IMG/VR virus record: IMGVR_UViG_3300047510_001118
Coordinates: 214,127 to 278,126 of that record
Strand: one strand, 5' to 3'
Length of the DNA stretch: 64,000 nt
Part shown: positions 5,200 through 59,642 of the stretch, piece by piece
Layout: each line of letters starts with the position of its first letter
Numbering within the stretch: the stretch's first letter is position 1
The notes under the pieces: generated by a model
The model's input: only the letters and a program-made list of their open reading frames with translations
The model's database searches: none
What the model was told of the DNA's origin: nothing
Made by a program: the position numbers and the translations under genes

Positions 5200-6111
5200 A
5201 TGCCAGTCGACTTAAACAATTTTGTAAGTGGTGCTAGATCAATTGCTGGTACTGCCGCTAATACATTAGGAACAGTAGTAAACTCTGTAAACACCTTAAA
5301 GACTCAAGGATTTGGAGCATTTGGCGCAAACATTGCGCAGGCTATCAGAGGAAAAAACCTATTACCCGGAGGAATGACAGGTAAATCTTCATCCCCGACT
5401 AGCGCAATTTTTTCTTCTAATTCTAGAGACTGGCGAGTACGATTAAACTTTCCTCCTAATTTTGCTTTTATCACTAGTCCGTTGCTAAGACCATTAATAG
5501 AAACTCAGGGATTAGTGTTCCCATACACACCGCAGATACAGATTACACATTCTGCCAATTACAGTGATATGAGTCCGGTTCATAATAATTATCCCTTTCT
5601 ATCTTATGAGAATAGCAAAGTTGATAACATAACTATTAATGCTCCTTTTTATGTTGAAGATTCTCTAGAAGCCGCATATTGGGTAGCGTGTATGCACTTT
5701 TTAAAAGCAGCCACAAAAATGCAGTTTGGTGAAGATTCAAATGCCGGCGCACCTCCTCCTATTTTTAAATTAAACGGTTACGGAGATTATGTGTTTAAAG
5801 ATGTACCAGTGGTAGTTAAATCATTTACAATGGATTTACCTAACGATTCAGATTATATTTCAACAGGCCTTGCCGCACAAGGCGGTGCTACAGGCAATAC
5901 TGCGGCAAGAATTGCTTCACAGGTTACCGGAATAAACTTTACTGGCTCTGCAACAGCTCAGGGAGTGTCCTGGGCACCAGTAAAAAGTACAATTAATATT
6001 ACAGTAGTGCCATTATACACTAGACAACAGGTTAGAAACTTCAGTCTTGAAAAATTCGTCAGCGGCGATTATGTTATTGGATCTACTGGAAACAAAACAG
6101 GATTTATCTAA
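5200..6111 (+). CDS. Baseplate tail-tube cap / initiator (gp48/gp54-like)
   Basis: LVFPYTPQIQITHSANY, PPPIFKLNGYGDYVFKDVPVVVKSF, tube-like fold signature; first gene of baseplate cluster. Confidence 0.7.
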   Translation: MPVDLNNFVSGARSIAGTAANTLGTVVNSVNTLKTQGFGAFGANIAQAIRGKNLLPGGMTGKSSSPTSAIFSSNSRDWRVRLNFPPNFAFITSPLLRPLIETQGLVFPYTPQIQITHSANYSDMSPVHNNYPFLSYENSKVDNITINAPFYVEDSLEAAYWVACMHFLKAATKMQFGEDSNAGAPPPIFKLNGYGDYVFKDVPVVVKSFTMDLPNDSDYISTGLAAQGGATGNTAARIASQVTGINFTGSATAQGVSWAPVKSTINITVVPLYTRQQVRNFSLEKFVSGDYVIGSTGNKTGFI

Positions 6112-52856: not shown

Positions 52857-53041
52857 TTAATTTTTAACCAAATTCTTTCATGTATATAATAATCGATGCT
52901 TAAAAGAATATGTAATGCTGTGGCAAATCCGGTGGCATTTCCTATGTCACCGGTAAACATATAAGTCCAAAGAATAGTAAACAGCCAGGCAGTAAGCCTG
53001 TATGTTACCATTCTTGTTATAGTTCTTTTTTTAGTTTCCAT
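52838..53041 (-). CDS. DUF2061-like small membrane protein
   Basis: ETKKRT..RMVTYR...YYIHERIW.KIKWG pattern. Confidence 0.7.
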   Translation of the reverse strand: METKKRTITRMVTYRLTAWLFTILWTYMFTGDIGNATGFATALHILLSIDYYIHERIWLKIKWGRID

Positions 53042-53775
53042 TACTTGCTTTGTGCTGGTAAAATGTAATCATAAACAGCAACACCGCTATCAACAGTGAT
53101 CTGCATAGCACCTGCGTCTGCGATCTTCATAGTAATTTCGCCGTCGAGTCCTAAGATGCTCTGTACTTGACTAACTGGCCAAGCCCATGTATGTTTTAGT
53201 TTACCGCCAACATCGTGTTGGAATACAAATGAACCTGCGTGTGTGCTGGCGTCACCAAAGAAAAATACTAGGTTGTTATCTTCTGTACGAACTTGGAATA
53301 CAGTTTCTTCGCTGTGTGCGGCACTTTGTAGTTTAAGTCTTTGAATAGCGGCCACTGTTGGTTTAAATTCAACTTCCCATGAAGCACCTTTAAACTTCAC
53401 TGACTTTAGTTTTTCGCTGATAATTTCACTGCTCATAAAGCGATAATCGTTTTGAAAATCGCCAGCGGCATTTACAAAATGTAAACCAGTTGGCACAGTA
53501 CTGCCATTGCGCTCGGCCTTGACTACATCAACCTTGGCATTTTCTTTATACTCTGGATTCTTCAAGTGAAGATTCAACTTGTCTAAATTAGGCATACCAA
53601 ACGTGCCATCAAATTCTGCTACAGCCTTGTGTGCTTGGGCAGTAACAATTACAGAGCGATCTTCCGCCATAGATTCGATCTGTGTTGAATTTGCGTCACC
53701 GGTAATTTTAACCAACGGCAAGAAGCCTAGGCTATGTGTATGTGCTACGATATCTGTTAGAATGTCTTTAATCAT
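53041..53775 (-). CDS. DNA polymerase sliding clamp (gp45-like)
   Basis: 244 aa directly downstream of the polymerase; GDFQNDYRFMS, MQITVDSG...YDYILPA ending. Confidence 0.65.
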   Translation of the reverse strand: MIKDILTDIVAHTHSLGFLPLVKITGDANSTQIESMAEDRSVIVTAQAHKAVAEFDGTFGMPNLDKLNLHLKNPEYKENAKVDVVKAERNGSTVPTGLHFVNAAGDFQNDYRFMSSEIISEKLKSVKFKGASWEVEFKPTVAAIQRLKLQSAAHSEETVFQVRTEDNNLVFFFGDASTHAGSFVFQHDVGGKLKHTWAWPVSQVQSILGLDGEITMKIADAGAMQITVDSGVAVYDYILPAQSK

Positions 53776-53828: not shown

Positions 53829-56498
53829 TTAAAACTCGAATAACTTATTAAAAGTATTCTTTTCTTCAGTTGATTTAATATCCCAACCTAGAACACCTAT
53901 TAAGTTTTCTAATTTATTGTCGATAATGGTATTTTCCATTTCGGCATCATCAAATGGCAATTCCATAAACCATTTGGGTAAACGCAGTTCGTCTACAGGA
54001 TAAGCCACTGAAGTATAACCTAAAGGATTATTTTTAAGTTTACATACAATGACTTTTTGCCCATCGACAATCTGCATTGAATATTTGTCACCGTTCATGC
54101 GTCGAAGTGTATTCCAATTAATGCTGGCACGTACATGACCTGGCATGTTAGTCTTACCAGCCTTTTCTTCTTTACCTTGATACTCGGTAATATTGTTGGC
54201 ACGTTTGGGACTACCTTTCTCCCAACCTGGCCGAGATTTAAATTCGGTTCTAAACGCAGTAATAAAGTCTAAGACCTGCTGTTCTGTTGCGCCTGTTAGA
54301 ACAAGTTCAAGAATGTCGCTTAGAAAGTCTTGAATAAATGCCGGAGTATCAGATCTTTTTAGATCAAGACCCATGGCTTTGATTTTTCCAGGCTTTCCGT
54401 CTATGTCGGCTCGCTTGCCTTCTTTGTCATAGACTAGCACAGCATATCGCTTTTTAGTAATAAACAAGCCTTTAGATCCAACAATCTCACGACCTGCTTT
54501 AATAACTTCACCACGACTTGGCGGACAATGAAACGCCTGTTCCATAAACTTTATAAAGGTACCATTTACTTCATCAGCAATTTGATCATACAATGCGGTA
54601 ATGTTTTCTTTAGTCCAAGGAATAGCACCAGACTCAATATCTTTTTTCAGTGTATTGTACGCTGAAAAATAACAAGAGTCAGTATCACCGTAGATTACTG
54701 CTTTACCTACGTGGTTGTATTCACCTGTGATGATTTCATTTACCTTGCCAGCCATATGTTTAGCAATTTGGCGCCCAACAAGTGTTGTTGACTGACCAAT
54801 ACGCTTGTCGAAAAAACGACAGCCAGGATTAAGAATAGCACCATACAAACTGTTGAGATTAATCTTTTTAACCAACTGTCTTTTATCCCAGTATTCTTCT
54901 TCAATTTTGTTTCCACTGGTAATACACTCCTTTAGTTTGGCCTGCATCTCTTTACGTTCAGCATACCAACGCTTTAACAAGCCGGGAATAATACCTTCTT
55001 TTTCATAAGTGAAAATAGTACCATTGGCTGAAATCATCCAAGGTTGATTACTGTCAAAAATTAGTTTATAGACTTCGGCAGCACTGTGTACAGTATTTTC
55101 ACCATCTTCCCAGTCAATGGTAATTTCTGTGTCACGACGCTGAGCCATTACTGCTTCATATTCTTCAGAACCAAACTTACCTTCCCAACTTGCGGCAAAT
55201 GATTTCTTTTTTAGATTCATTTGTTCATGGATGTATGCTTGTGTGTATACTGGTCGTAGTTGTCCAATGATTGTCTCTGGACCCATGTTCAGCGCACGAA
55301 TAGCACTTGGATACAGTGAGTTAATGTCTAGAGAACCAATCCAGTCTTGAATACCTTCTTTGGGATAGGCAACATACGCACCAGCGGCCTGAGTATCTTC
55401 GCTGTCGTCTCGTTTAGGACGATTAGGAACTTGGAAGCCTCTACGATGTGCTTCATTAATAATAGCCTGTTCTGTAACAGCCACAGCACCCATTGTAGTC
55501 TGTAACAATACAGTATTTTCGTGTGCGATTTTATTAGCAAGATCAATAAACTTTAGTTTATCGTCTAATTTGTTTAACAACGCAACGTCTTGTCTATTAT
55601 ATTCAATAAACTTTTTAAAGTCTTTGTTATATAATTGGTCTAAGGTGCCTTCGTAGACAGTTTTAGTTTCGCCAATCTCTGTTTCACCGATAGCATCTAA
55701 TCGATATGTATGACGTTCTTCATAGGTAAACTTACGATAAAGTTCAAGACTGTCTAAGTGAACTCGACCGATTAGGTCATAAGTTTGAGCAGTCTTGCCG
55801 TACTTTTCATATTCTCTCTTTTTAGGAAATTGCCCCCAAAGACAAAAACGTTTAGTATCTTCTTTACTCAATACCTGTGTTATACGGTTTACAGTATAAG
55901 GAATATCATAACCTTCTGAGTTCCAACCACTTAAAATATCTGCGTCATCGATAAGTTCAAGAAACGTTTCTAGCATATCGGACTCGTTGTCAAATATGTA
56001 AGTGTTTGGAAATTCTTTAACTGCTTCAGTGGCCTGCGCAGTGGTCATGGTCTTAGGAGCCAATGCTAGAGTAATAAGTCTATCTAACCATTTCAGATGT
56101 ACTGAAATAGCAGTGATTGGCATAAACGCATCTTCAGGTGTGGAGTAACCTCTTTCCGGATCAAAGTCTACCTCAATGTCGAAGAAGCAGATGTTTAATT
56201 TAGGTGCGTCTTGATTAAGATAGTTTTCACTGAGATGAACAAAGATAGGATTAATATCTGATTCGTAAAGTTCTTTGCCATTGTTAATAGCCAACTCTTT
56301 ACGAAAGTCTTTACTGTTCTTACAGACTACTCGAGTAAGTGGATCTCCAAATATACTTTGAAATTTACCACGGGGATCTGGATAGTAAAATGTATAGCGT
56401 ACAGGATGTTCTTTATATACCCGTTCGCCTTGGTCGTTTCTTTCAACGACTTTGATGATATCATTCTCTCTATCAAAGAGAGCGTCTACATAACTCAT
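53829..56498 (-). CDS. gp43: Family B DNA polymerase (gp43-like), 889 aa
   Basis: Exo FDIEVD; SLDINSLYPS, KINLNSLYG, YGDTDS, KKRYA. Start MSYVDAL with SD AAGGAG. Confidence 0.96.
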   Translation of the reverse strand: MSYVDALFDRENDIIKVVERNDQGERVYKEHPVRYTFYYPDPRGKFQSIFGDPLTRVVCKNSKDFRKELAINNGKELYESDINPIFVHLSENYLNQDAPKLNICFFDIEVDFDPERGYSTPEDAFMPITAISVHLKWLDRLITLALAPKTMTTAQATEAVKEFPNTYIFDNESDMLETFLELIDDADILSGWNSEGYDIPYTVNRITQVLSKEDTKRFCLWGQFPKKREYEKYGKTAQTYDLIGRVHLDSLELYRKFTYEERHTYRLDAIGETEIGETKTVYEGTLDQLYNKDFKKFIEYNRQDVALLNKLDDKLKFIDLANKIAHENTVLLQTTMGAVAVTEQAIINEAHRRGFQVPNRPKRDDSEDTQAAGAYVAYPKEGIQDWIGSLDINSLYPSAIRALNMGPETIIGQLRPVYTQAYIHEQMNLKKKSFAASWEGKFGSEEYEAVMAQRRDTEITIDWEDGENTVHSAAEVYKLIFDSNQPWMISANGTIFTYEKEGIIPGLLKRWYAERKEMQAKLKECITSGNKIEEEYWDKRQLVKKINLNSLYGAILNPGCRFFDKRIGQSTTLVGRQIAKHMAGKVNEIITGEYNHVGKAVIYGDTDSCYFSAYNTLKKDIESGAIPWTKENITALYDQIADEVNGTFIKFMEQAFHCPPSRGEVIKAGREIVGSKGLFITKKRYAVLVYDKEGKRADIDGKPGKIKAMGLDLKRSDTPAFIQDFLSDILELVLTGATEQQVLDFITAFRTEFKSRPGWEKGSPKRANNITEYQGKEEKAGKTNMPGHVRASINWNTLRRMNGDKYSMQIVDGQKVIVCKLKNNPLGYTSVAYPVDELRLPKWFMELPFDDAEMENTIIDNKLENLIGVLGWDIKSTEEKNTFNKLFEF

Positions 56499-56509
56499 TT
56501 TTCTCCTTA

Positions 56510-56556
56510 TGCGATTTACGGCTCGCAAACACCAAACGTGCGGCTTATGGCCCGCA
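56510..56556 (-). promoter_or_regulatory. Tandem hairpins upstream of polymerase RBS (candidate translational operator)
   Basis: TGCGG-gccataag-CCGCA and TGCGA-gccgtaaa-TCGCA, compensatory G-C/A-T change, 1 nt before AAGGAG. Confidence 0.7.
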
Positions 56557-56570
56557 AACCTTACTGTATA

Positions 56571-56864
56571 TTAATTAATTAGCATTCTAACTAGTCCCAG
56601 TGAGTCAATAGTGACTAGCAAGAGATAGTTAGCCAGCATGCCAAAACTTCTACGAGTCCATGCAGCCCAGCCGTACATAGCACAACCAGCGATCCAAATA
56701 GGATACAAAACCAACAAAGGTGGCGTAGGGACTGTAAGGGCCATTGTGATGCTACAGCCAATACTAACAGCCCAAGCAAGAAGCTCGACACAAAAACGGA
56801 AAGGATTACTACGCCAATCATCTTTTATCCATTCGATGGTTGGTCGAAATACAGAGTCAATCAT
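56571..56864 (-). CDS. Small 3-TM membrane protein
   Basis: Three hydrophobic helices; VE..AW / LY / W...RR / N.L pattern. Confidence 0.7.
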   Translation of the reverse strand: MIDSVFRPTIEWIKDDWRSNPFRFCVELLAWAVSIGCSITMALTVPTPPLLVLYPIWIAGCAMYGWAAWTRRSFGMLANYLLLVTIDSLGLVRMLIN

Positions 56865-57121
56865 TTATCCTTTCCAACAGTAACAATGATAGTCTCTAAA
56901 TCATCAAACTCTGAATATACATCATTCCAGTTACCCTTGTGAGCAATTTTAATTGCTTTGGTAATTAAAGAGGGTTTAACATTCAGTTCTTCAGCAACTG
57001 CTTTTACTGTTTCTTTTAAACCTTCATTGAGGCTTTCAATTTCGTATTGAATTTGAACACCTTCGTTAATTAGTCTTTCTAATTTGGCTTTTTCTTCTGG
57101 TCCGTAAGTTCTGTCGCTCAT
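56861..57121 (-). CDS. T4 DsbA-like double-stranded DNA-binding protein
   Basis: 86 aa; EIESLNEGLKETVKAVAEELNVKPSLITKAIKIAHK helical pattern. Confidence 0.6.
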   Translation of the reverse strand: MSDRTYGPEEKAKLERLINEGVQIQYEIESLNEGLKETVKAVAEELNVKPSLITKAIKIAHKGNWNDVYSEFDDLETIIVTVGKDK

Positions 57122-57145: not shown

Positions 57146-57174
57146 ATTATATATGTATGCTCAACAGAAGTCAA
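57146..57174 (-). promoter_or_regulatory. Sigma70 consensus promoter heading the replication operon
   Basis: TTGACT-17 nt-TATAAT; SD AGGAG. Confidence 0.88.
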
Positions 57175-57194: not shown

Positions 57195-57220
57195 AAAAAA
57201 AGGCCCCAAAGGGCCTTTTT
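57195..57220 (-). terminator. Intrinsic (bidirectional) terminator
   Basis: GGCCC-tttg-GGGCC followed by T7 on - strand and T5 on + strand. Confidence 0.88.
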
Positions 57221-57233
57221 ATTTTGACACAAA

Positions 57234-59642
57234 TTATGCGGCAGGTGTAGAAATAGTATTGCCACCAGGTTCCGCTGCCGGCGCCGCCGCAGTTTTCATA
57301 CTGGCTAGTTTATCTGCTTTCTTTAGAACGTTGTTTAATCTAGTCTTAATGTCATCTGGTAAAGTTTGAACTGCTTTTTCATCTTTAGCATATTTCTGTA
57401 TGATTTCTAGATTTTTCAATAATTCTGCTTTGTCCGCTGGATCCATTTGGGCTTCGGGACTCTTTAACCAATTATATAGAGCAGCCACACCGCCTGCTAT
57501 TCCGAGGGTAATAAAAGCACCTCGTTTTGTAACTTTGCCTAGAACTTTTTTACCAAATCCTTTAAGTCTTTCCCAAGCAGAAGGCTTACCAGGTTCTGGT
57601 GCTGGTGTAGGTCCTGGTCCTGGTGTAGGTCCTGGTCCTGGTACTGGTAGACCCTTTCTCATCTTCTCAATGTCAAACGAAGAAAGTTTTTCTGAAGGGT
57701 TAGCACGATTAAAATATTGATCAGGTACACCAGGAACTTTTTCCCAAGTTTTGCCACCTACTCTAATAACTCCAGGCAACGGTGGTCCTGGATCAAGTGG
57801 GCCAGCCTCACTTAAAATTTCATTTTCGGATAACAATGTTAGTTGAAGTATAGATATTTGTTCACTGGGAGTAAAATCATTAATGTTTTCAAGTACAAGT
57901 TTTTTAAGGTCTTTAATAGATAGCTCGTCAATACTTTCGGCAATCTTATATTTGCCCATGATTCTTTCTACAACAGTTAATGCCTGTACCAATTGATTCT
58001 TGGCCAAAATTGCTTTTCCGTTTTCTAATGCTTTGATTAACTCTGGAGTAATTTTGCCAGTTTCGGGCATACCAGCCATCTTCTCAAATTGTTTAATTGC
58101 GTCTGCGGTCTCAGTTCCCATCTTACCGTCTGCGCCAAATCTAGGTAATTTAAAACCTAAACCTAGTAATAACTCTTGAACTTTTTTAACATCACCGCCG
58201 CCTGTAGTTGTTGTAGGATCTGTTTTAGTATCTGTCTTATTATCTGTTTTAGTATCTGTCTTATTATCTGTCTTAGCATCTGTATCTGTTTTAGTATCAG
58301 AACTAAATTGTGCTGGGAGATTAAGGGCACGATTTGCCAATTGTAAAATTTCAGGATCATCTGGGAAATCTGTTTTCAATCCAGCGGCATAGGTCTGTAA
58401 TTCTTTGTATTCTGCAGCAGTTAATTCTTCACTTAGTGTTGTACCTTCAGCAATACGTTGTATACGAGCTATTAATTCGCTCATACTTTCAGGAACAACT
58501 TTTGATTGTCCAGATGTAGTGCCTGGTGCTGGAGATGTAACTTTAGGTTGATTAGCCTTGGCTAGTAATTCTTTTACTCTGGCCAATCTTTCTTCTTTGG
58601 ATTTAGCAGTTCCGTCTTTGTTGTAATCTGCTGGAAACTTTTTCTCAGGTTCAGGCTTAGTTAAACTGTAGTCAACTTTGCCTTTTGTAGGATCTTGATT
58701 TCCTGGTTTAGCAGGGTTTAAAGTAGTAGTATCGGTTTTAGACAACGCATCGGCTTTGGCCTTCTCGTCGGCTTTGTTTTTTTCTTCCACTGCTTTGATT
58801 GCGGCTACAATTTCTGCTTTAACTGCTTCAATTTCTTTTTGTGTTTCAGGATCTTGTTTTAGTTGATCAGACATGCTGTCAAATTTTAAAACTATAGAAT
58901 TAATTTCGTCAATAATTTTTTTAAGTTCGGCATTGCTATTTTGCGCACCACCAAATCCTTTGCCACTAGTTGTGCCGTCTGGATTGATAGTTACTCTTTC
59001 TTCAACGTCTTGATCAATAATTTCGTCTTGGAATTCGTTGATCAATGATTCAAAAATACTTGATTCAGTTTTAAATTTAAATTTATCTGGGTTTAAACCA
59101 AAAAATGTTCCACTGCCTGAAGCGGCACTGTCGGAGCCACTAGGACCAGCAGTTTTCATTTTTTCTACAGCGGCTTTTAATTGTGCTCCTAGATCTTTAA
59201 GTTTAGGAAGATTTTCTGTTTTAAATTTTTCGTACTTTTGCTTAGTTACAACACCTTGGCTTCTAGTTCTAAGATCTTGGTCGTATTGGCCTTTTTCGTC
59301 GCCTCTAAAAGCTCGTCCTAGTGCTGTAGAAGTTTTAGCATTATCGGGGATTAAGCCTAGGTCTGCTAGGGCACGATCGGATCTTTCGCTACCAGTGGCT
59401 CCTATGCTGATTCGTCCAGGACCACCCATTCCTTGATTTACGCTCTGTTTTCCAACAAAGCCTCCACTAATAGGATCATATAACCCAGGAAGTTTGTGTT
59501 TCCATGCTAGATCGTTAAGTATTTCAGCACGAGCTTGCTCATCATTTTCTTTGCCTTTTACAGCCGCTTCAACATCGTCTAATGATATTGCTTCAGCAAG
59601 TACTACTTCGTCTAGTTTGTTTAAAATTGCTCTTATATCCAT
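57234..59642 (-). CDS. Large low-complexity virion (internal head-like) protein with peptidoglycan-binding domain
   Basis: PG_binding_1-like GGDVKKVQELL..LG..LPRFGADGKMGTETADAIKQFEK..G...TG; many xxE-S/A motifs; late promoter upstream. Confidence 0.65.
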   Translation of the reverse strand: MDIRAILNKLDEVVLAEAISLDDVEAAVKGKENDEQARAEILNDLAWKHKLPGLYDPISGGFVGKQSVNQGMGGPGRISIGATGSERSDRALADLGLIPDNAKTSTALGRAFRGDEKGQYDQDLRTRSQGVVTKQKYEKFKTENLPKLKDLGAQLKAAVEKMKTAGPSGSDSAASGSGTFFGLNPDKFKFKTESSIFESLINEFQDEIIDQDVEERVTINPDGTTSGKGFGGAQNSNAELKKIIDEINSIVLKFDSMSDQLKQDPETQKEIEAVKAEIVAAIKAVEEKNKADEKAKADALSKTDTTTLNPAKPGNQDPTKGKVDYSLTKPEPEKKFPADYNKDGTAKSKEERLARVKELLAKANQPKVTSPAPGTTSGQSKVVPESMSELIARIQRIAEGTTLSEELTAAEYKELQTYAAGLKTDFPDDPEILQLANRALNLPAQFSSDTKTDTDAKTDNKTDTKTDNKTDTKTDPTTTTGGGDVKKVQELLLGLGFKLPRFGADGKMGTETADAIKQFEKMAGMPETGKITPELIKALENGKAILAKNQLVQALTVVERIMGKYKIAESIDELSIKDLKKLVLENINDFTPSEQISILQLTLLSENEILSEAGPLDPGPPLPGVIRVGGKTWEKVPGVPDQYFNRANPSEKLSSFDIEKMRKGLPVPGPGPTPGPGPTPAPEPGKPSAWERLKGFGKKVLGKVTKRGAFITLGIAGGVAALYNWLKSPEAQMDPADKAELLKNLEIIQKYAKDEKAVQTLPDDIKTRLNNVLKKADKLASMKTAAAPAAEPGGNTISTPAA
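57590..57653 (-). repeat. Pro/Gly/Thr coding repeat (PVPGPGPTPGPGPTPAPEP)
   Basis: GGTGTAGGTCCTGGTCCT repeated twice on + strand. Confidence 0.8.
58218..58298 (-). repeat. 12/24-nt coding tandem repeat (KTD-x)
   Basis: ATCTGTTTTAGTATCTGTCTTATT x2 plus degenerate 12-mers encoding DTKTDTDAKTDNKTDTKTDNKTDTKTD. Confidence 0.85.

Follow-up and report, generated by a model that had tools for sequence, protein, structure and literature searches.

A covariation-supported tandem pseudoknot leader of the DNA polymerase gene in a freshwater jumbo phage

Autogenous translational control of a replicative DNA polymerase is so far known only from phage T4 and its close relatives, where it gave rise to the first SELEX experiment. 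The family B polymerases (gp43) of T4 and RB69 repress translation of their own mRNA by binding a hairpin next to the Shine-Dalgarno (SD) sequence of gene 43 (PMC3014915). The T4 operator is a plain hairpin with a 5-bp stem and an 8-nt loop (AAUAACUC) located 7 nt from the SD, and the 3' AC/AA loop bases have been highlighted in T4, RB69, and RB49 (PMC3014915). The single-strand-binding protein gp32 also represses its own synthesis, but through a small H-type pseudoknot 5' of the ribosome-binding site (RBS), followed by more than 40 nt of unstructured UUAAA/UAAA repeats along which gp32 spreads to reach the RBS (PMC535899). The preQ1-I translational riboswitches are the smallest H-type pseudoknot aptamers, and ribosomal-protein leaders such as the L20 operator combine a pseudoknot and a stem-loop to control the RBS of the regulator's own operon (PMC1888825).

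A structurally different RNA occupies the equivalent position in front of a distant gp43 homologue in a large, uncultivated clade of freshwater jumbo phages. The sequence analyzed (the window) is a stretch of 64,000 nt at the end of a 278-kb IMG/VR viral record (IMGVR_UViG_3300047510_001118, positions 214,127 to 278,126), which is estimated to be 75% complete and therefore represents a jumbo phage. Sequencing runs listed as holding it were freshwater and lake DNA metagenomes, with no RNA run among them. A sequence-only reading had proposed two tandem covarying hairpins before the polymerase RBS, constituting a duplicated autogenous operator that works as in T4 but with a new loop sequence and two sites, allowing cooperative binding or coregulation by a second factor. 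The hairpins it described were confirmed in every detail. Its interpretation is only partly supported: a conserved, covarying, duplicated, gene-specific RNA element is tied to the polymerase RBS, but its units are pseudoknots rather than simple hairpins, the RNA is not a relative of the T4 operator, polymerase binding is inferred by analogy, and cooperative binding or a second factor remains speculation.

Organization and conservation of the polymerase leader

The element lies on the minus strand, the strand of the polymerase gene, within a 72-nt intergenic gap (Table 1). Both stems are perfect 5-bp helices enclosing 8-nt loops (GCCATAAG in the first and GCCGTAAA in the second), and the closing pair differs between the two copies (G-C versus A-U). 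The second hairpin ends 1 nt before AAGGAG, and ATG follows 4 nt later. The downstream gene encodes a family B polymerase with an exonuclease domain (Pfam DNA_pol_B, 3.6e-35; DNA_pol_B_exo1, 3.8e-19). By tblastn, its product is 52% identical to the polymerase of Sinorhizobium phage Phosso, 47% to that of Atu_ph07, and about 44% to those of the Escherichia phage 121Q/PBECO4 group of large (~350-kb) phages, and it is about 32% identical to T4 gp43 over the N-terminal part. The start giving the conserved N terminus MSYVD is the real one, rather than a TTG at 56528 reported by automated open reading frame (ORF) listing.

Table 1. Coordinates of the leader and its surroundings in the 64,000-nt window
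Feature	Coordinates	Strand	Description
Pseudoknot 1 (distal)	56539-56560	-	S1a GGU 56560-56558; L1 U 56557; S2a UGCGG 56556-56552; S1b GCC 56551-56549; L3 AUAAG 56548-56544; S2b CCGCA 56543-56539 (hairpin 1, 56539-56556)
Conserved A	56562	-	2 nt upstream of pseudoknot 1
Spacer	56534-56538	-	CGUUU here; 3-6 nt and variable in relatives
Pseudoknot 2 (proximal, putative core operator)	56510-56533	-	S1a GGU 56533-56531; L1 GUU 56530-56528; S2a UGCGA 56527-56523; S1b GCC 56522-56520; L3 GUAAA 56519-56515; S2b UCGCA 56514-56510 (hairpin 2, 56510-56527)
Shine-Dalgarno sequence	56503-56508	-	AAGGAG
DNA polymerase gene	53829-56498	-	Family B (T4 gp43-like), 889 aa; start ATG 56498-56496
97-aa ORF	56571-56864	-	Long hydrophobic stretches, possibly a membrane protein; stop TAA 56573-56571, 10 nt before pseudoknot 1; context only
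DsbA-like gene	56861-57121	-	86-aa small DNA-binding protein
Sigma-70-like promoter	57146-57174	-	TTGACT-17-TATAAT, 11 of 12 consensus matches
Terminator-like hairpin	57197-57220	-	Strong; 10 bp plus a T run
AT-rich block	56563-56580	-	Upstream of pseudoknot 1
802-aa protein gene	57234-59642	-	Peptidoglycan-binding domain
244-aa protein gene	53041-53775	-	Just downstream of the polymerase gene; phrog_12062

A 21-nt consensus of the two copies, allowing up to 3 mismatches, matched only these two sites in the window (0 expected from 100 shuffles) and only these two in the entire 278-kb genome. Thermodynamic folding alone was not significant (z of -0.5 to -0.9), and the support is comparative. 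The minimum-energy fold predicted for the 64-nt leader (56499-56562) is one long G.U-rich helix between the two repeats (GGUUUGCGGGCC with GGCUCGCAAAC), but this helix is specific to this sequence and is not conserved in relatives, and it was rejected as the functional fold.

A blastn search against 50,697 phage records found no match, and relatives were therefore reached through the protein. A polymerase-based search of IMG/VR returned 80 loci at 77 to 100% amino acid identity. The element is present in all 79 of those with upstream sequence, and this presence includes 4 loci in which a small ORF sits between the element and the polymerase gene. In 77 of the 79, both hairpins lie directly before the polymerase start, while in the other two (loci L030 and L061) both units precede a 40- to 46-aa ORF that is itself followed by the polymerase gene. 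In 61 distinct sequences found through the protein, hairpin 2 is paired in every sequence, and 4 of its 5 pairs change on both sides. In an extended set of 139 distinct sequences, 94.9% of all cells are paired, compared with 77% in shuffles and at most 39% in structures slid by 1 to 3 columns, and hairpin 2 is paired in 139 of 139, with three pair types at one position. Hairpin 1 is more plastic, with 4- to 6-bp stems and sometimes a bulged base, but all five of its pairs change on both sides, giving 9 of 10 pairs over the two stems. The A upstream of pseudoknot 1 is conserved in 138 of 142 distinct sequences.

A DNA-level or termination feature (a protein-binding palindrome, an origin-type hairpin, or an intrinsic terminator of the upstream genes) is very unlikely and was rejected. 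A simple scan flags hairpin 1 as terminator-like because CGTTTGGTGT follows it in the window, but the spacer is variable in relatives and usually has no U run (e.g., CACAG, AACAUG, and CACC). Furthermore, the stems covary while their sequence is free, which is the opposite of a protein-binding palindrome. G.U pairs, including the U.G in the pairing of the loop with its upstream triplet (S1, below), would be C.A mismatches on the other strand, so the folded strand is the sense strand, which argues for RNA of the polymerase message and against a double-strand DNA site. The upstream gene also changes between relatives, whereas the element stays attached to the polymerase RBS.

Pairing of the hairpin loops with upstream triplets

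A GGU (or GGC) lies 1 to 3 nt upstream of each stem, and the first three loop bases are GCC, apart from the variants described below. The two triplets can pair as G:C, G:C, and U.G, making each unit a compact H-type pseudoknot, and this pairing was examined in exact scans of IMG/VR. At pseudoknot 1, all 19 loci whose loop begins GCU have AGU, never GGU, upstream, and these represent about 9 distinct sequences with different stems and different polymerase N termini. Among 136 parsed elements, the combinations are GGU/GCC in 104, GGC/GCC in 20, AGU/GCU in 11, and none in 1, such that the first pair is G:C in 124 and A:U in 11. On a FastTree phylogeny of the polymerases, the loop base changed at least 8 times, and in 6 of 6 independent contrasts on supported branches the upstream base changed with it (sign test, P = 0.03).

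At pseudoknot 2, GGU and GCC are invariant in the 61 sequences found through the protein alone. In the scans, GGU+GCC was found before at least 76 polymerase genes and AGU+GCU before two, whereas GGU+GCU and AGU+GCC were never found in that position, although these patterns occur 76 and 52 times, respectively, by chance elsewhere in the collection. The support for S1 is nevertheless limited by its length of 3 bp. Its middle pair never varies, and a scan for GUC loops, which would show a compensatory change there, found none. The third pair is only loosely kept, occurring as U.G, C:G, or U:A; 5 of 6 ACC loops pair, with one C.A exception, and one UCC loop gives a U.U mismatch.

Each unit is therefore a 22- to 24-nt pseudoknot with a 3-bp S1 (GGY:GCC), an L1 of 1 to 3 nt, a 5-bp S2, no L2, and an L3 of the form NNAAN. 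Although the unit nominally shares the stem and loop lengths of the T4 gene 43 operator, its position next to the SD of a homologous gene, conserved A residues in the 3' half of the loop, and single-copy, gene-specific status, the first three loop bases are paired rather than free. The loop consensus is GCCNNAAN rather than the T4 type with its -UAAC-/-UAAA- core, there are two units and the second abuts the SD, and no alignable homology or regA-43 context was found. The closest isolated phages (Phosso and Atu_ph07, at 47 to 53% polymerase identity) lack the element, and this points to independent origin rather than descent. In contrast to the gene 32 operator, the element precedes the polymerase gene, is duplicated, and has no long unstructured tract before the RBS. 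The L20 operator shares the use of two related sites, one a pseudoknot, but involves an unrelated protein family, and there is no rRNA mimicry to appeal to here.

Specificity and coupling to the ribosome-binding site

A covariance model of the two stems gave one hit of 73 bits (E = 1e-19) in the 278-kb genome, with the next at 13 bits, and one hit in each of two other large relatives. It gave none in Phosso or Atu_ph07, whose polymerase leaders also look different by eye. Of 78 hits to a strict pseudoknot 2 pattern in IMG/VR, 74 immediately precede an MSYVD-type polymerase start, 2 precede a small ORF followed by the polymerase gene, and 2 are chance matches with unpaired stems. In 185,579 bacterial and archaeal genomes, the tandem pattern was absent, and a single-unit-plus-SD pattern gave 8 hits, all attributed to chance. 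Six of these have stems with at most 4 of 5 pairs, and the two with 5 of 5 (L440 and L442) lie in sequence with no nearby start, that of L440 being GC rich. Polymerases that carry the element are 67 to 100% identical to that of the window over the N-terminal 450 aa.

In the window's clade, the SD core begins 0 to 6 nt after pseudoknot 2 in 153 of 154 cases, whichever ORF comes next: the polymerase, a Cys-rich ORF of 40 to 63 aa, or a short upstream ORF whose stop codon overlaps the polymerase ATG. In four relatives (L030, L061, L097, and L123) the first gene after the element is a 40- to 63-aa ORF, mostly Cys rich (F-x-F-E-A-C-E-x-C type). It was considered as a hidden regulator, but it has no homologue in the window's genome. 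In loci L240 (minus strand, ~5524 to 5620) and L277, a single-pseudoknot variant (AGU-AUU-UGUCA-GCU-AUAAA-UGACA) plus SD precedes a short upstream ORF of 15 to 28 codons, whose stop codon overlaps the polymerase start (ATGA), suggesting translational coupling.

A sister clade was reached with the polymerase of L240, which is about 67% identical to that of the window. Its leaders have a different upstream hairpin followed by one pseudoknot of the same family (GGY-L1-S2-GCC-AUAAN-S2'). In 41 of 53 parsed cases, the SD GGAG begins inside the 3' arm of S2, and that arm covaries with its partner (CCG/CGG-AG, CCA/UGG-AG, and UUCCG/CGGAG). Folding of this pseudoknot family is thus directly coupled to access to the SD, and control of translation initiation is the most economical function. 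The sister-clade leaders (L361 to L439) also carry a second conserved module ~30 to 70 nt upstream of the polymerase start, ahead of the pseudoknot, consisting of GAGUC, a covarying 4- to 5-bp hairpin (loops ACGUUAC or CGUAA), and then AUGAAUCA or AUGUAGAAC. About 10 of 69 leaders in this clade lack the whole element, which, together with its absence from the nearest isolated phages, indicates that it is dispensable.

The sister-clade unit has the topology of preQ1-I riboswitches, with a 5' stem, a short L1, a second stem whose 3' strand carries the SD, and an A-rich L3 crossing the first stem, and tandem repeated small aptamers are found in other riboswitch classes. A tandem riboswitch, in which each unit binds a small molecule such as a nucleotide-related metabolite and ligand-stabilized folding shuts the RBS, is therefore conceivable but unlikely. 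No Rfam family matched credibly (two noise hits only at a permissive threshold of E up to 10). The first stem is 3 bp rather than 5, the unit is 22 to 24 nt rather than 34, and there is no L2 in which a ligand-pairing base could sit, presumably leaving little room for a ligand pocket. Furthermore, riboswitch classes normally control several genes of one pathway, whereas no true hit was found here before any other kind of gene, including queuosine genes, or in any cellular genome. If this reading were nevertheless correct, the units would be the smallest known ligand-sensing pseudoknots and would couple a nucleotide-pool or DNA-precursor signal directly to translation of a replicative polymerase.

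Putative effector and neighboring genes

The attachment of the element to one gene, its presence once per genome, and its absence before other kinds of genes are the classical signature of an autogenous, protein-binding leader. In the best-supported model, the 62-nt leader folds into two pseudoknots, and a protein binds pseudoknot 2 first and keeps the 30S subunit off the adjacent RBS. The effector would most likely be the polymerase itself when not engaged on DNA, by analogy with T4 gp43 and gp32. Pseudoknot 1 would be a duplicated auxiliary site that may add affinity or cooperativity or may stabilize the mRNA. The comparative data demonstrate conservation, stem covariation, the pseudoknot pairing, single-copy status, exclusive linkage to the polymerase operon, and tight coupling to the SD, whereas polymerase binding and repression as the outcome are inferred. 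Confidence falls accordingly: a conserved, structured cis-regulatory RNA is all but certain, the pseudoknot architecture and an action on translation initiation are both likely (the latter slightly less so), and the identity of the polymerase as ligand is no better than an even proposition. In the window's clade the SD lies outside the pseudoknot, so repression would require a bound factor, and the conserved loop bases are largely explained by the fold and do not by themselves demand a sequence-specific protein.

Two sites suggest a dimeric or cooperative binder, whereas T4-type polymerases are monomers. The effector could therefore be another protein blocking the RBS through the same RNA, such as the 86-aa DsbA-like protein, the phage single-strand-binding protein, or a host factor, although this is considered unlikely. 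The DsbA-like gene (phrog_639 “transcriptional regulator,” 5e-11; Pfam Phage_DsbA, 0.0011, below the curated cutoff) is the conserved upstream neighbor of the leader in nearly all relatives, and the same C-terminal sequences precede it in L030, L061, and many other loci. A GapR-like identity was considered for this protein, but only the weak DsbA-like assignment is supported. In T4, the gene upstream of gene 43 encodes the translational repressor RegA. However, DsbA-type proteins are annotated as double-strand DNA binders, and Phosso has the same small gene, annotated “DNA binding protein,” upstream of its polymerase gene but no element. A general regulator would also be expected to have more than one site per genome, yet only one exists. 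No RegA-family match was found in the genome, although the control for that search was uninformative.

A role without a dedicated ligand is also possible but unlikely: the pseudoknots could protect the mRNA from 5'-end-dependent decay or processing, set a fixed low or temperature-dependent initiation rate, or serve as a ribosome standby or enhancer element. The conserved bases can be explained by the fold alone, and in the sister clade the fold itself sequesters the SD. In addition, an AT-rich block lies at -20 to -7 from pseudoknot 1 in the window and at the equivalent positions in 142 relatives, with TAAATA at -17 in 35 sequences and extended -10-like TGnTATAAT boxes in one subclade. These boxes, 5 to 15 nt upstream in some relatives, could be a phage promoter placing pseudoknot 1 at the very 5' end of a transcript, or simply stop codon context. 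However, restriction to a single gene in a genome of more than 278 kb would be odd for a generic stabilizer or enhancer. Pseudoknot 2 is also conserved far beyond what pairing requires (L1 is RUU, the first two stem pairs are fixed, and L3 is NNAAA).

In the window, the leader follows two ORFs and a near-consensus sigma-70-like promoter about 600 nt upstream, so it is probably intercistronic there. This promoter, a consensus match only, follows a terminator-like hairpin upstream of the DsbA-like gene, and the polymerase gene may be transcribed from it as the third cistron. The 97-aa ORF, which had no family match, has been inserted between the DsbA-like gene and the leader; in most relatives the DsbA-like gene abuts the leader directly.

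Full-text literature searches on polymerase operators and pseudoknot leaders in phages returned only the T4 literature and no description of this element. The tandem pseudoknot is thus a new RNA motif, a clean candidate for a new RNA family with strong covariation support, within the established principle of gene-specific translational control of a phage replication gene. More than 150 distinct natural variants already provide a mutational map of the fold. If the polymerase is the ligand, this would be a second, independent solution to the same regulatory problem, showing that autogenous translational control of B-family replicases arose at least twice with unrelated RNAs, and would provide a compact 24-nt RNA tag for a B-family polymerase. 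If it is not, the element is a new gene-specific RNA regulator with a different ligand.

ARAGORN found no tRNA or tmRNA genes in the window. The 244-aa gene downstream of the polymerase gene belongs to a family of unknown function, but in Phosso the second gene downstream of the polymerase, after a small hypothetical ORF, is annotated as a sliding clamp, and the 244-aa protein may be a divergent clamp. The 802-aa protein has a PG_binding_1 domain and a weak endolysin-family match and is probably a virion-associated or lytic cell wall enzyme.
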